DNA of 64,000 bases, taken from contig JAPMXV010000072.1 of NCBI GenBank assembly GCA_026936335.1, forward strand, positions 124,001-188,000. Reading direction: 5' to 3'. The position numbers and the translations under genes are program-made. Of the stretch, positions 60,253-64,000 are shown piece after piece. The DNA comes from Mantamonas sphyraenae STR306 (taxonomy: Eukaryota; Protista; CRuMs). The notes beneath the pieces are model-generated. The model ran no database searches. It was not told where the DNA came from and worked only from the letters and a program-made list of their open reading frames with translations. Within the stretch, counting starts at the first letter, position 1. The number at the start of each line of letters is the position of its first letter.

Positions 60253-60573
60253 TTGGGAAGATCGTGGGTGAGCCAGCGCATGGTGGGGAGGATGGGGGTT
60301 GGAGGGAGGATGGACAGAGTGTGGGGTGTGTGGTTGGGTGGGATGTGTCGCTGCAGGGAAGTGGTGGATACGAGGATCTGGACGATGTGATGGAGAGCGA
60401 GGGTGAAAGGTTGTTTGCATCGCAGATGTTGGGCTTCGGCGTGTGCTGGGAGGAAGGAGTGCATGGGAAACATGTGGTTGCATGCGACAGGAGTGGTGAC
60501 GGTGGTTGGAGATGGATCTGGGAGGAGGATGGGGTGTTGTTTGGGAGGGAGGTGCGCGGCTGGGGACACTTCA

Positions 60574-63500
60574 ATGGACAAGAGACAACGTGATGAAGGG
60601 GGAGAGACGGAGGTTGGAATTGAGGTGATGAAGAGACAACGGATAGAGGAGGGGGGACGTAGGGCAATGCAGACGCGGTTTGTGGAAGTGGAGATGTCAA
60701 GAGGGAACGGCGACAGGGACGGAGAGGCTGGGGAAGAGGGGGAGGGTGCTATGGATGTGGATGGAGTGGGGAGGGTGGAAGGGGCGCACACGGGTGAGTC
60801 ATCGTCGTCGTCTGGAGTGAGGGATGGGCAGGGAAAGGATGGGAACACGAAAAGAAGGGGGAAGTTTGGTGGTCACTGGTGGGAGGAGGGCGGAATGAGG
60901 GATGTGAGGGTACTGGTGCTGGGGAATGATGGGAATGGGACACTTGGATCTGTGGATGAGCAGCGGGTGATTGAAGGGGCGTGTCATGAGACGCCATTGG
61001 AGCCATTGGGGAGGCTGGACACGCGTCAGGACGCTGTGGTGCGGCTGGCGCGTGAGTACGGGCAGCACATGGTGCATATTGTGGCACACATGGGAAGAGA
61101 GTACGTGGAGGCTGAGGATGGGGATGTGATGCGGCAGACACTTGTGGATGCAGTGAGGGAGGCAAGGCCTGTGCTGGTGTTTCTGAACGGGTGTGAGAGC
61201 GAGGAGATAGCAAAGAAGGTGGGTGAGTATGTGCCAGTGGTGATTGGATACAGGGAGAAGGTGCTCGACGGGCCAGCTGTGAAGATGGCAGGGGCACTGT
61301 ATGAGGCATTGGGAGCGGGAGAGGGAGTAGCGACGGCGTTTGGGGAAGCACAGAAGGCAGGAGGGGACAGAGAGGGGAAGAAGGCAGTGTTGGTGACATG
61401 GGAGGGGTGGGAGAAGGAGAGGCTGGTGAATGGGAGAGGGAGGAGTGCAAAGGAGGCAGAGGCAGGATGGGCAAAGCGGGTGGACAATCTGAGCAAGAAG
61501 AGGGAGCTGGTGGCGAGGAATGGTGTCATGGAGAAGGTGTGGGGAGAAGAAGGGGTGGTGGTGATGCATGGGGCACGGGGCATGGGCAAGACAAGTGTGG
61601 CACAGATGTATGCGTGGAGGTTGAAAGAGGAAAGGGCGGCGGAGGTGGTGTGGTGGGTGCGTGGGCAGAGCAGGGAGGAGGTGGTGAGTGATGTGCTGCA
61701 ACTGGGAGTGGCATTGGGGGTGTTGAAGAACCAGGAGGTGGAGATGGCGAACAAGGAGGAGGTGCGGGAAGGGATGGCACGGCAGACGATACGCGCGCTG
61801 AAGGGACGACGGTGGGTGATGGTTGTGGATGGAGTGGAGGAGTGGGGTGATGTGAAACCTGTGCTGCAGGAGGGAGGGACGGTGGTGGTGACAACGTGGA
61901 GGGATGGGATTTGGGACACGAGGGCGGTGGACAAAGTGGTGCGAGTGGGGATCATGGAGGATGGGGAAGTGGATGCAGTGTTTGAAAGTGAAGGGGTGGT
62001 GATGAGTGGAATGGATGAGGAGGAGGAGTTGAAGGCGTATGGGGAGCTGAAGGAGCTTCTGGGAGGGATGGCGCTGGCAGTGCGACAAGCAGCGGCTGTG
62101 ATTGGGAAGGGTAGAGGAAGAGGACGGGTGGGCAAGTACAGGAAGAGACTGGGGAGGAACTTGGGGCAGCTGGAGAAAGGGATTGATTCAGATGCTTATG
62201 ACAAGACGACGATGGCAGTGTGGAAGTTGGCGATGGAGGCAGCTGGGGAGAAGAACGAGGATGCAGAGGGACTGATGCAGTGTCTGGCACTTTTGGATGG
62301 GAGTGGAGTGCAAAGGAGAGTGGTGGTGACGCTGATGGAGAATGTGGAGGGCGTGGGGGACAGGGACGAGGCAGAGGAGCGGGCAGAGGATGCGATGGAA
62401 TCGTTGGAGCGTGTGTCGCTGGTGCAACGGGCTGTGGATGGGGATGGTTGGCAGGTGCATGGACTGGTGCAGTTGATGACGCGGGGAGGGGAGGAGCTAC
62501 AGGTGGAGGCAGACGGGGGTATGGAGGCATGCCAGCGTGTGTTGAAGATGATGGGGAAGGAGTTTGCCTTTGACCCAAGTAGGTCACTGGAAGAGCTTGT
62601 GTGGCACAGGGAGATGCTGATGCATGGGGAGCGGGTGTGGAGGGTGTGTCAAGCAGCGTGCCAAGCTTCAGGTGAAGTTAACAACGTGCGTTGGGTTGGG
62701 CAGAATGTGGCAGCGGTGCATGATTGGATGGGAGCATACGGGAAGGCGGAGAGGGTGCTGGAGGAGGTGATTGAGGTGCAGAGGAGGGCAGGGATGGATG
62801 GGGAGGAGAATACGGGATGGGCAAGGAGCATCCACAACATGGCTGGGGTGTACGAAGCCAAGGGAGAGTACGATCGGGCACTGGAGCTGCATGAGCAGGC
62901 ACTGGAGATCATACGACGGGTGCATGGTGGGGATGCGCACCCGTCTGTGGCCACGAGCATCCACAACATGGCTGGGGTGTACCAGGCCAAGGGAGAGTAC
63001 GATCGGGCACTGGAGCTGTATGAGCAGGCACTGGAGATCATACGACGGGTGCATGGTGGGGATGAGCACCCATCTGTGGCCACGAGCATCCACAACATGG
63101 CTGAGGTGTACCAGGCCAAGGGAGAGTACGATCGGGCACTGGAGCTGTATGAGCAGGCACTGGCGATCGAGCGACGGGTGCATGGTGGGGATGAGCACCC
63201 ATCTGTGGCCACGAGCATCCACAACATAGCTAGTGTGTACGATGACAAGGGAGAGTACGATCGGGCACTGGAGCTGTATAAGCAGGCACTGGAGATCGAT
63301 CGACGGGTGCATGGTGGGGATGCGCACCCGTCTGTGGCCACGAGCATCCACAACATAGCTAGTGTGTACGATGACAAGGGAGAGTACGATCGGGCACTGG
63401 AGCTGTATAAGCAGGCACTGGAGATCAAGCGACGGGTGCATGGTGGGGATGCGCACCCGGAAGTCGCAGCGAGCATTCACAACATGGCTGTGGTGTACCA

Positions 63501-64000
63501 GGCCAAGGGAGAGTACGATCGGGCACTGGAGCTGCATGAGCAGGCACTGGAGATCGATCGACGTGTGCATGGTGGGGATGAGCACCCGTCTGTGGCCACG
63601 AGCATCCACAACATGGCTGGGGTGTACAAAGCCAAGGGAGAGTACGATCGGGCACTGGAGCTGTATGAGCAGGCACTGAAGATCGATCGACGTGTGCATG
63701 GTGGGGATGAGCACCCGTCAGTGGCCACGAGCATCCACAACATGGCTGAGGTGTACCAGGCCAAGGGAGAGTACGATCGGGCACTGGAGCTGTATGAGCA
63801 GGCACTGGAGATCGAGCGACGGGTGCATGGTGGGGATGAGCACCCGTCAGTGGCCACGAGCATCCACAACATAGCTAGTGTGTACGATGACAAGGGAGAG
63901 TACGATCGGGCACTGGAGCTGCATGAGCAGGCACTGGAGATCAAGCGACGTGTGCATGGTGGGGATGAGCACCCGTCAGTGGCCACGAGCATCCACAACA
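60574..64000 (+). CDS. NLR-like STAND protein: CHAT (caspase-fold) protease + NB-ARC NTPase + tandem TPRs; truncated by the window end
   Basis: Frame +1 is open from 60391 to 64000 (first ATG 60463, likely start 60574). VHIVAHMG and LVFLNGCES; Walker A GARGMGKT; Walker B WVMVVDGVE; VVVTTWR; LGGMALAVRQAAA; WQVHGLVQ; 43-aa TPRs. Confidence 0.9.
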   Translation, partial: MDKRQRDEGGETEVGIEVMKRQRIEEGGRRAMQTRFVEVEMSRGNGDRDGEAGEEGEGAMDVDGVGRVEGAHTGESSSSSGVRDGQGKDGNTKRRGKFGGHWWEEGGMRDVRVLVLGNDGNGTLGSVDEQRVIEGACHETPLEPLGRLDTRQDAVVRLAREYGQHMVHIVAHMGREYVEAEDGDVMRQTLVDAVREARPVLVFLNGCESEEIAKKVGEYVPVVIGYREKVLDGPAVKMAGALYEALGAGEGVATAFGEAQKAGGDREGKKAVLVTWEGWEKERLVNGRGRSAKEAEAGWAKRVDNLSKKRELVARNGVMEKVWGEEGVVVMHGARGMGKTSVAQMYAWRLKEERAAEVVWWVRGQSREEVVSDVLQLGVALGVLKNQEVEMANKEEVREGMARQTIRALKGRRWVMVVDGVEEWGDVKPVLQEGGTVVVTTWRDGIWDTRAVDKVVRVGIMEDGEVDAVFESEGVVMSGMDEEEELKAYGELKELLGGMALAVRQAAAVIGKGRGRGRVGKYRKRLGRNLGQLEKGIDSDAYDKTTMAVWKLAMEAAGEKNEDAEGLMQCLALLDGSGVQRRVVVTLMENVEGVGDRDEAEERAEDAMESLERVSLVQRAVDGDGWQVHGLVQLMTRGGEELQVEADGGMEACQRVLKMMGKEFAFDPSRSLEELVWHREMLMHGERVWRVCQAACQASGEVNNVRWVGQNVAAVHDWMGAYGKAERVLEEVIEVQRRAGMDGEENTGWARSIHNMAGVYEAKGEYDRALELHEQALEIIRRVHGGDAHPSVATSIHNMAGVYQAKGEYDRALELYEQALEIIRRVHGGDEHPSVATSIHNMAEVYQAKGEYDRALELYEQALAIERRVHGGDEHPSVATSIHNIASVYDDKGEYDRALELYKQALEIDRRVHGGDAHPSVATSIHNIASVYDDKGEYDRALELYKQALEIKRRVHGGDAHPEVAASIHNMAVVYQAKGEYDRALELHEQALEIDRRVHGGDEHPSVATSIHNMAGVYKAKGEYDRALELYEQALKIDRRVHGGDEHPSVATSIHNMAEVYQAKGEYDRALELYEQALEIERRVHGGDEHPSVATSIHNIASVYDDKGEYDRALELHEQALEIKRRVHGGDEHPSVATSIHN
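62827..64000 (+). repeat. 129-bp (43-aa) TPR tandem array, at least 9 full units, continuing beyond the window
   Basis: Units start at 62827, 62956, 63085, 63214, 63343, 63472, 63601, 63730, 63859, 63988; consensus SIHNxAxVYxxKGEYDRALELxxQALxIxRRVHGGDxHPSVAT. Confidence 0.96.

Follow-up and report, generated by a model that had tools for sequence, protein, structure and literature searches.

Shuffled, nearly identical tetratricopeptide repeats with variable sites aligned to a putative binding face in a family of NLR-like genes of the flagellate Mantamonas sphyraenae

What is known of NLR-type receptors whose tandem repeats show high internal conservation (HIC) comes almost exclusively from filamentous fungi. 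The fungal NLRs that combine an NB-ARC domain with tetratricopeptide repeats (TPR) mostly contain 42-residue units of high internal conservation, show polymorphism in repeat number, and possess three positively selected sites along with further polymorphic ones, all located on the concave side (Dyrka et al. 2014, PMC4986451). In Podospora, divergent TPR HIC NLRs are known to exchange repeats with each other and, more generally, STAND ATPases associated with HIC repeats are reported across all domains of life, CHAT being one of their N-terminal domains (Ament-Velasquez and Saupe 2026, PMC13449251). For the non-fungal cases, this survey lists architectures only, without site-wise selection or contrasts of synonymous divergence (dS) between loci; it mentions neither Mantamonas nor the CRuMs, just as the paper on the M. 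sphyraenae genome (25.06 Mb in 78 contigs, GC 59.19, genes mostly mono-exonic; PMC10492846) mentions neither NLRs nor TPRs. Here, we describe a gene of Mantamonas sphyraenae STR306 that lies at the end of a window of 64,000 nucleotides (positions 124001-188000 of contig JAPMXV010000072.1, or C72; window-equivalent positions above 64000 are read from the same contig). Its sequence supports the assignment of the product to NLR-like STAND proteins with a predicted CHAT-like protease, an NB-ARC switch, a winged-helix region, and a TPR solenoid. Judging from the comparison of its repeat units with each other and with those of its paralogs, the repeats have probably been shaped by concerted evolution combined with diversifying selection on a putative binding face.

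The closest described counterparts of this gene appear to be the NB-ARC/TPR NLRs of Podospora anserina (Pa_2_10340, PaPnt1, and Pa_7_3550), in which, as in Mantamonas, the NB-ARC domain is followed by long TPR units of the kinesin light chain (KLC) type that are more than 85% identical, and which share with it the small number of selected or polymorphic positions, the reshuffling of repeats, and the exchange between divergent paralogs (PMC4986451, PMC13449251). The Mantamonas repeats match the crystal structures of Podospora HIC TPRs (4y6c and 4y6w) at E about 1e-30. There are, however, distinct differences: the Mantamonas unit consists of 43 residues as compared to 42 in Podospora, the N-terminus is CHAT-like rather than sesB-like or prion-forming (PFD), the host is a unicellular CRuMs flagellate rather than a filamentous fungus, and the domain for nucleotide binding and oligomerization (NOD) is approximately 30% identical to any protein found. 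The original prediction, made from the sequence of the window, invoked HET-E as the model. The evolutionary regime is indeed the same in HET-E and HET-D as well as HET-R (together, the HNWD genes) of Podospora, in that diversifying selection acts on four hypervariable positions of nearly identical repeats, which are gained, lost, shuffled, and transferred between unlinked paralogs (PMC13449251). The HNWD proteins, however, combine a HET effector domain with a NOD of the NACHT type and with WD40 repeats that form beta-propellers, and no homology to the Mantamonas repeats is implied; the analogy holds for the regime, and the fungal NB-ARC/TPR HIC NLRs are the closer analogues (PMC4986451, PMC13449251).

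The conserved array of the gene consists of 15 units of 129 bp (43 amino acids) each and extends on the forward strand from 62827 to window-equivalent 64761; the edge of the window cuts through it, with 761 bp lying beyond. Repeat finding and translation place units 1-9 at 62827..63987, with starts at 62827, 62956, 63085, 63214, 63343, 63472, 63601, 63730, and 63859; the window ends with the first 13 nucleotides of unit 10 (63988..64000), and units 10-15 fill the remainder. Tandem Repeats Finder reports a period of 129 bp, 9.1 copies, and 92% matches at 62826-64000. On the N-terminal side, the array is preceded by a degenerate cap TPR unit (62689..62826), which is recognizable in translation but has no nhmmer match to the unit profile, and a degenerate C-cap unit, number 16, follows beyond the window (window-equivalent 64762-64890). 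With mean pairwise identities among the 15 units of 0.918 for nucleotides and 0.869 for amino acids over 645 residues, the array belongs to the HIC class (about 85% or more identity, at least 100 amino acids). For units 1-9, the residues that had been listed at unit positions 5-7, 10-11, 22, and 29 are reproduced exactly. The claim that variation is concentrated at these seven positions stands inasmuch as they account for 68% of the amino acid entropy in the 15-unit array; the list is, however, incomplete because positions 23, 27, 37, 40, and 43 also vary in units 1-9 and hold most of the remaining entropy of the array. The reported multi-nucleotide, nonsynonymous changes are real as well, with codon 7 occurring as GGG, GAG, AGT, GTG, TTG, or ATG, and codon 29 as ATA, GAG, GAT, AAG, or TAT, several of these variants differing by more than one nucleotide.

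The focal gene is a member of a multigene family: the genome contains 13 loci with the NOD domain of this gene, distributed over contigs C72, C68 (three), C67 (three), C51, C73 (two), C76, C2, and C77, and 14 arrays of the 129-bp unit on 9 contigs, ranging in size from 3 to at least 76 units. From these arrays, 199 full-length, indel-free units were extracted, the genome total being at least that number. Across the 199 units, 34 scaffold positions are 91.5% identical, as compared to 35% for nine variable positions (3, 7, 10, 11, 22, 27, 29, 40, and 43). In the first 126 units, the nonsynonymous pairwise diversity per site was related to the mean synonymous diversity (0.151), yielding ratios of 3.8, 3.1, 4.0, and 3.2 at codons 7, 10, 29, and 40, respectively, 2.3 and 2.1 at codons 43 and 27, and about 1.6 at codons 3, 11, and 22, against at most 0.64 at all 34 scaffold codons. 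When the nonsynonymous rate is compared with the global synonymous rate (dN/dS), the values are 2.3-4.3 for codons 7, 10, 29, and 40, about 2 for codons 27 and 43, and about 1.7 for codons 3, 11, and 22. Changes were also counted by parsimony, in a manner akin to single-likelihood ancestor counting, on a FastTree tree of the 124 unique units. The totals were 211 for synonymous and 591 for nonsynonymous changes, the latter including 67.5, 65, 71, and 41 at codons 7, 10, 29, and 40, respectively; measured against the global synonymous rate, the Poisson p for these four ranges from 2e-22 to 2.5e-6. When 43 tests are corrected for, the nonsynonymous excess is significant at these codons and at codons 43 and 27 (Poisson p from 2e-22 to 8e-5). 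The same sites emerge from array to array: among the ten arrays with at least 7 units, positions 7 and 10 are within the six most variable ones in all ten, position 29 in nine, position 40 in seven, and position 22 in six. Thus, the variation is neither evenly spread nor mostly synonymous, but falls on a few codons with a nonsynonymous excess that recur throughout the larger arrays.

Superimposed on this pattern are multiple traces of shuffling. A block of five nucleotides that accounts for the IAS..DD variant (nucleotides 15, 19, 21, 30, and 32 of the unit) is present in units 4, 5, 9, and 15, where it is joined to four different right halves; the combination with different right halves had been noted for units 4, 5, and 9, is real in the assembly, and extends to unit 15. 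In the opposite direction, a six-nucleotide right-hand block (nucleotides 110, 118, 119, 123, 126, and 127; Ala37 with EVAA) is common to units 5 and 13, whose left halves differ. In the focal array, 124 of the 253 pairs of informative sites are incompatible, and a permutation test of the pairwise homoplasy index (PHI) type gives p = 0.001-0.0015. Because sites of the two blocks are often incompatible with each other (45 of 64 pairs), but sites of one block seldom are (7 of 28 on the left, 1 of 28 on the right), the breakpoints can be placed in the invariant middle of the unit. The focal array is not exceptional in this respect, with Hudson-Kaplan minimum numbers of recombination events (Rm) of 3-9 in each of eight arrays. 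Within the focal array, similarity does not decay with distance, all lags from 1 to 14 showing identities of 0.905-0.934; hence, exchange is not limited to neighboring units. Both edge units are degenerate while the interior units are homogenized, the N-terminal cap being a unit that has escaped homogenization.

Exchange seems to reach beyond individual arrays. Nucleotide identity is higher within arrays than between them (0.918 versus 0.868), the nearest relative of each focal unit resides in its own array (2-9 differences, as against 5-13 to units elsewhere), and among the family arrays no identical units common to different genes were found at either the nucleotide or the amino acid level. 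The most telling comparison is that of two paralog clades, whose NOD domains differ by a dS of 0.75-1.18, with amino acid identity of 56-64%, whereas the synonymous difference (pS) of TPR units between the same two clades is 0.161 (dS 0.18), as compared to 0.148 within one array. Since purifying selection acts on the protein and would not preserve synonymous sites, the repeats must have been exchanged or homogenized between loci on different contigs. The diversification by recombination that had been proposed for this array is, accordingly, borne out both by the shuffling of blocks within and between units and by the gap between the TPR dS of 0.18 and the NOD dS of 0.75-1.18. As for its function, the TPR array would be the sensor domain of a putative receptor and may bind ligands.

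As for the structure of the repeats, Pfam assigns them to TPR_12 (361 bits, E 2.6e-110) and TPR_10 (348 bits, E 3e-107), both of the KLC type, in which the unit comprises 42 residues as compared to 43 here. An AlphaFold2 model of eight units, built from an alignment of ten paralogous eight-unit windows, reached a pLDDT of 93.9, with helix A formed by unit residues 39-43 together with 1-12, and helix B by residues 15-33. The best structural matches found by Foldseek are KLC1/2 and consensus TPR solenoids, with a TM score, by target, of up to 0.83 for KLC1. In this model, the 43-residue units are shown to form a solenoid of the KLC type. A HMMER alignment to the engineered consensus TPR equates unit position n with TPR position n+2 and places a nine-residue insertion after position 29. 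Unit positions 43, 3, 4, 7, 10, 11, and 40 thereby correspond to canonical TPR positions 2, 5, 6, 9, 12, 13, and 33, respectively. According to Magliery and Regan (PMC1261162), TPR positions 2, 5, 9, 12, 13, 33, and 34 are the most variable and jointly make up the concave face, and HOP binds its peptides through positions 2, 5, 6, 9, 12, and 13. Thus, six of the nine variable sites of Mantamonas match six of the seven concave hypervariable positions, and the near-invariant Asn4 corresponds by alignment to the ligand-contacting TPR position 6. By alignment rather than by geometry, sites 40, 43, 3, 7, 10, and 11, which lie on helix A of the model, would map to the concave face, as had been predicted; sites 22, 27, and 29 belong to helix B, where 22 and 29 fall on the stripe 15-18-22-25-29-32 and 27 lies off it. 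The acceptance of charged and bulky residues at sites 7, 10, 29, and 40 argues against their burial.

The repeats form the C-terminal part of a protein encoded by a single exon with no apparent intron; its coding sequence runs on the forward strand from 60574 past the window edge at 64000 to a stop codon at window-equivalent 64933-64935 (C72:188933-188935). The reading frame is open from 60391, with candidate in-frame ATG codons at 60463, 60574, 60694, and 60895. A compact N-terminal domain of approximately 180 residues (60895..61428) is CHAT-like, that is, of the caspase fold: the CHAT profile (PF12770) aligns only by its C-terminal part (223-265 of 289), with an E of 0.0022 and a score of 18 bits, which is below the Pfam gathering cutoff of 24 in the focal copy, but CHAT is matched by nine of ten paralogs, the best E being 8.3e-7. 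Two histidines and a cysteine of this domain, His61 (61075-61077), His65 (61087-61089), and Cys100 (61192-61194), are invariant in ten paralogs that span two clades with only 46% identity in the CHAT-like domain. Protein language-model features of the domain are nearest to those of short bacterial CHAT proteins (score 0.96), and its AlphaFold2 model displays an alternating strand/helix pattern at a pLDDT of 52, too uncertain for use. Next comes the NB-ARC nucleotide-binding domain, followed by a winged-helix-type region assigned to DUF7779 (together 61477..62700). The Pfam match to NB-ARC (36.1 bits, the cutoff being 23.5, and E 5.5e-9) identifies a central NOD with the P-loop GxxGxGKT at 61570-61593, and DUF7779 is matched at E 3.9e-5. 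This order of domains, CHAT-like, NB-ARC, winged-helix, and TPR, is what makes the protein NLR-like.

The relatives of the NOD are distant. A word-indexed protein search with residues 1-740 (CHAT and NOD) returned nothing at E up to 0.001, and when HMMER was used to compare the NOD region exhaustively with 1.84 billion representatives, it yielded distant relatives only, the best at E 1.5e-23 and about 31% identity. All of the ten best matches contain DUF7779 and belong to the NB-ARC or related STAND NTPases, TPR_10/12 being present in eight; one comes from Actinokineospora, and the rest are metagenomic or lack an organism name. Several of the ten have TIR_2 or SIR2_2 domains at the N-terminus, domains that are typical of defense systems. 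The bacterial and metagenomic STAND proteins, thus, share with Mantamonas the order NB-ARC, DUF7779, and TPR_10-12, with swappable N-terminal effectors, but differ from it in that their identity to the Mantamonas NOD is at most 33%.

Taking these observations together, the following course of events can be envisaged. Unequal crossing-over and gene conversion, both within arrays and between loci, would keep the units homogeneous while creating new combinations of them. Diversifying selection would then retain the variants that line the concave face of helix A (unit positions 40, 43, 3, 7, 10, and 11) and those at the helix-B sites 22, 27, and 29, so that each array would present a different binding surface. 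As happens in other systems of the NLR-like kind, binding of a ligand might release the oligomerization of NB-ARC and switch on the putative CHAT protease; an immune role of the Mantamonas family is plausible. Several points weigh against this scheme. The dN/dS values come from simple counting on a single tree despite recombination; the strong bias toward G-ending codons (55% G at third positions) may depress the synonymous rate, and the synonymous diversity at codons 10, 29, and 40, which is 2-3 times the mean, makes some local heterogeneity of rates possible. The assignment to the concave face stems from the consensus alignment and the literature rather than from model coordinates, sites 27 and 29 sit on helix B, and the CHAT assignment combines a sub-cutoff score in the focal copy with a low-confidence model. 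Finally, the family is known here from sequence and models of one assembly, whereas polymorphism in repeat number between individuals is a hallmark of the fungal system.

Could the array simply be young? Recent tandem duplication followed by neutral drift at unconstrained surface residues would agree with the global pN/pS of 0.77 among the 15 units, which is close to neutrality, and the near-identical blocks of units in the giant array of the paralog on contig C51 do resemble a very recent amplification. Relaxed constraint, however, predicts a dN/dS near 1, whereas the observed values are 3-4 at a handful of codons and at most 0.9 at the 34 scaffold codons, and the most variable codons recur in 10 independent arrays. 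Moreover, the synonymous differences between units (pS 0.10-0.20) show that these are not brand new, and the fact that TPR units of paralogs with a NOD dS of about 1 are as alike as the units of one array calls for continuing exchange rather than a single burst; we consequently consider drift after amplification quite unlikely. An artifact of assembly or polishing, with unit number, order, or mosaic structure produced by collapsed PacBio RS II reads and by short-read correction mapping to multiple places, is a more technical concern. The assembly was obtained with FALCON from 112x PacBio RS II data, followed by Racon and Pilon polishing, and for the Illumina reads used in polishing, a 2-kb array with units that are 92% identical offers no unique placement (PMC10492846); the frame slips of 1-2 nucleotides in the arrays of some paralogs could be consensus errors. 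The read-level data at hand are Logan contigs from the study that produced the assembly, which attest the short local words of the array but are not independent and are too short to establish unit order: the pieces that fall on the array measure just 52-109 nucleotides, and 201 of the 287 fit two places. On the other hand, the PacBio reads, at 112x coverage, are far longer than the 2-kb array, these short same-study contigs from four runs contain no alternative letters within the array, the frame is intact across all 16 units, the pattern of variable sites is repeated at 14 arrays on 9 contigs, and the multi-nucleotide blocks are in perfect linkage, unlike the outcome of random mis-polishing. 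Given the intact frame, the recurring sites, and the linked blocks, a wholesale artifact is unlikely, although individual units or the unit number may contain errors.

A different kind of alternative accepts the evolutionary regime but not the function: the protein could serve as a protease or scaffold that is regulated and diversifies its TPR surface to suit endogenous partners or prey-derived cues, for example in programmed cell death, mating, or recognition during feeding. The sequence gives no pointer to the ligand, kinesin light chains use their TPR_10/12 arrays to bind cargo of endogenous origin, and fungal HIC NLRs serve allorecognition besides defense (PMC13449251). Yet the combination of a multigene family, a selected sensor surface, and an effector of the cell-death type is the signature that goes with the recognition of non-self in animals and plants as well as in fungi and bacteria (PMC4986451, PMC13449251), and the nearest NOD relatives bear TIR_2 and SIR2_2 N-termini, so that a non-immune role appears rather unlikely, if more deserving of attention than the possibilities discussed above. 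The least probable option, to which we assign very little weight, is a cassette-type mechanism, whereby frame-slipped arrays, the giant one on C51 and others, would act as silent donor libraries for expressed CHAT-NB-ARC-TPR genes on other chromosomes via gene conversion, in functional likeness to the pseudogene donors of chicken immunoglobulins and to the cassettes of lamprey variable lymphocyte receptors (VLRs); if true, donor-library diversification would be at work in a unicellular, free-living eukaryote that branches near the base of Amorphea.

Concerted evolution with diversifying selection on a putative binding face, the reading that we favor, also invites comparison with candidate receptors from another eukaryote that is neither plant nor animal, namely, the NB-ARC-TPR proteins of Ectocarpus, for which shuffling of TPR modules is proposed as a generator of diversity by Zambounis et al. 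2012 (PMC3341825). The Mantamonas array differs from these in being contained in one exon and in having units that are far more alike. In the Ectocarpus genes, each TPR is reportedly a separate exon, such that shuffling would be exon shuffling. The HIC NLR regime as such is already known; the Mantamonas genes are new in their CRuMs host, in a unit of 43 residues, in an effector that is CHAT-like, and in how clearly the NOD and the repeats contrast at synonymous sites. In this flagellate family, a homogenized scaffold, variable sites aligned to the binding face, recombination inside the units, and apparent inter-chromosomal exchange are coupled to a predicted CHAT-like (caspase-like) protease. 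It could provide a clean, single-exon system in a small genome for asking whether this diversity-generating regime is ancestral or convergent in eukaryotes, what the receptors of a bacterivorous protist sense, and how inter-chromosomal repeat exchange works without repeat-induced point mutation (RIP) or multicellularity.

Several members of the family have peculiarities of their own. On the minus strand of C51 (C51:131501-143500), the CHAT/NB-ARC head of one paralog is followed by a giant array, at least 76 units in size, in which higher-order blocks of about 9-13 units are repeated threefold and three frame slips (-1, +1, and -2 nucleotides) are present; one open reading frame (ORF) of 3478 amino acids stays open across two of the three. 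It may represent a pseudogene or a reservoir of repeats, unless the consensus is in error. In the paralog with a 22-unit array at C77:80705-81932, one TGA and one TAG lie inside the NOD, which is matched in two pieces; this gene is either a pseudogene or contains an intron. The arrays at C68:156397-157433 and C76:73297-74843 include one indel unit each, with spacings of 131 and 128 nucleotides, respectively, instead of 129, and their ORFs are split in two; both add to the frame-slipped members of the family. The paralog at C67:111047-115624 has an N-terminal extension of about 500 residues, which puts the P-loop at ORF residue 875, and an insertion between CHAT and NB-ARC in which about 23 residues in a row are hydrophobic; it is either an anchor in the membrane or an intron read through without splicing. 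Short and more diverged copies of the 129-bp unit (pS about 0.27 to the others) are found at C34:601595-601981 and C60:89524-89681, contigs on which there is no match to the family NOD; they may be parts of other TPR proteins or relics.

Most units in the arrays of this family, the focal one included, lack stop codons in the +1 frame, and the antisense frames are poor in them; hence, frame slips leave the ORF open, and long mechanical ORFs appear on both strands, one example being the 348-residue ORF at 62668-63714 on the minus strand. The long antisense and +1-frame ORFs across the array were, therefore, set aside as by-products of a stop-poor repeat. The coding strand at 60391-64000 is extremely rich in G and poor in C, with G making up 50% of first and 55% of third codon positions and C only 12-18%, and the GC skew rises to 0.61 in the 60-62 kb bin of the window.

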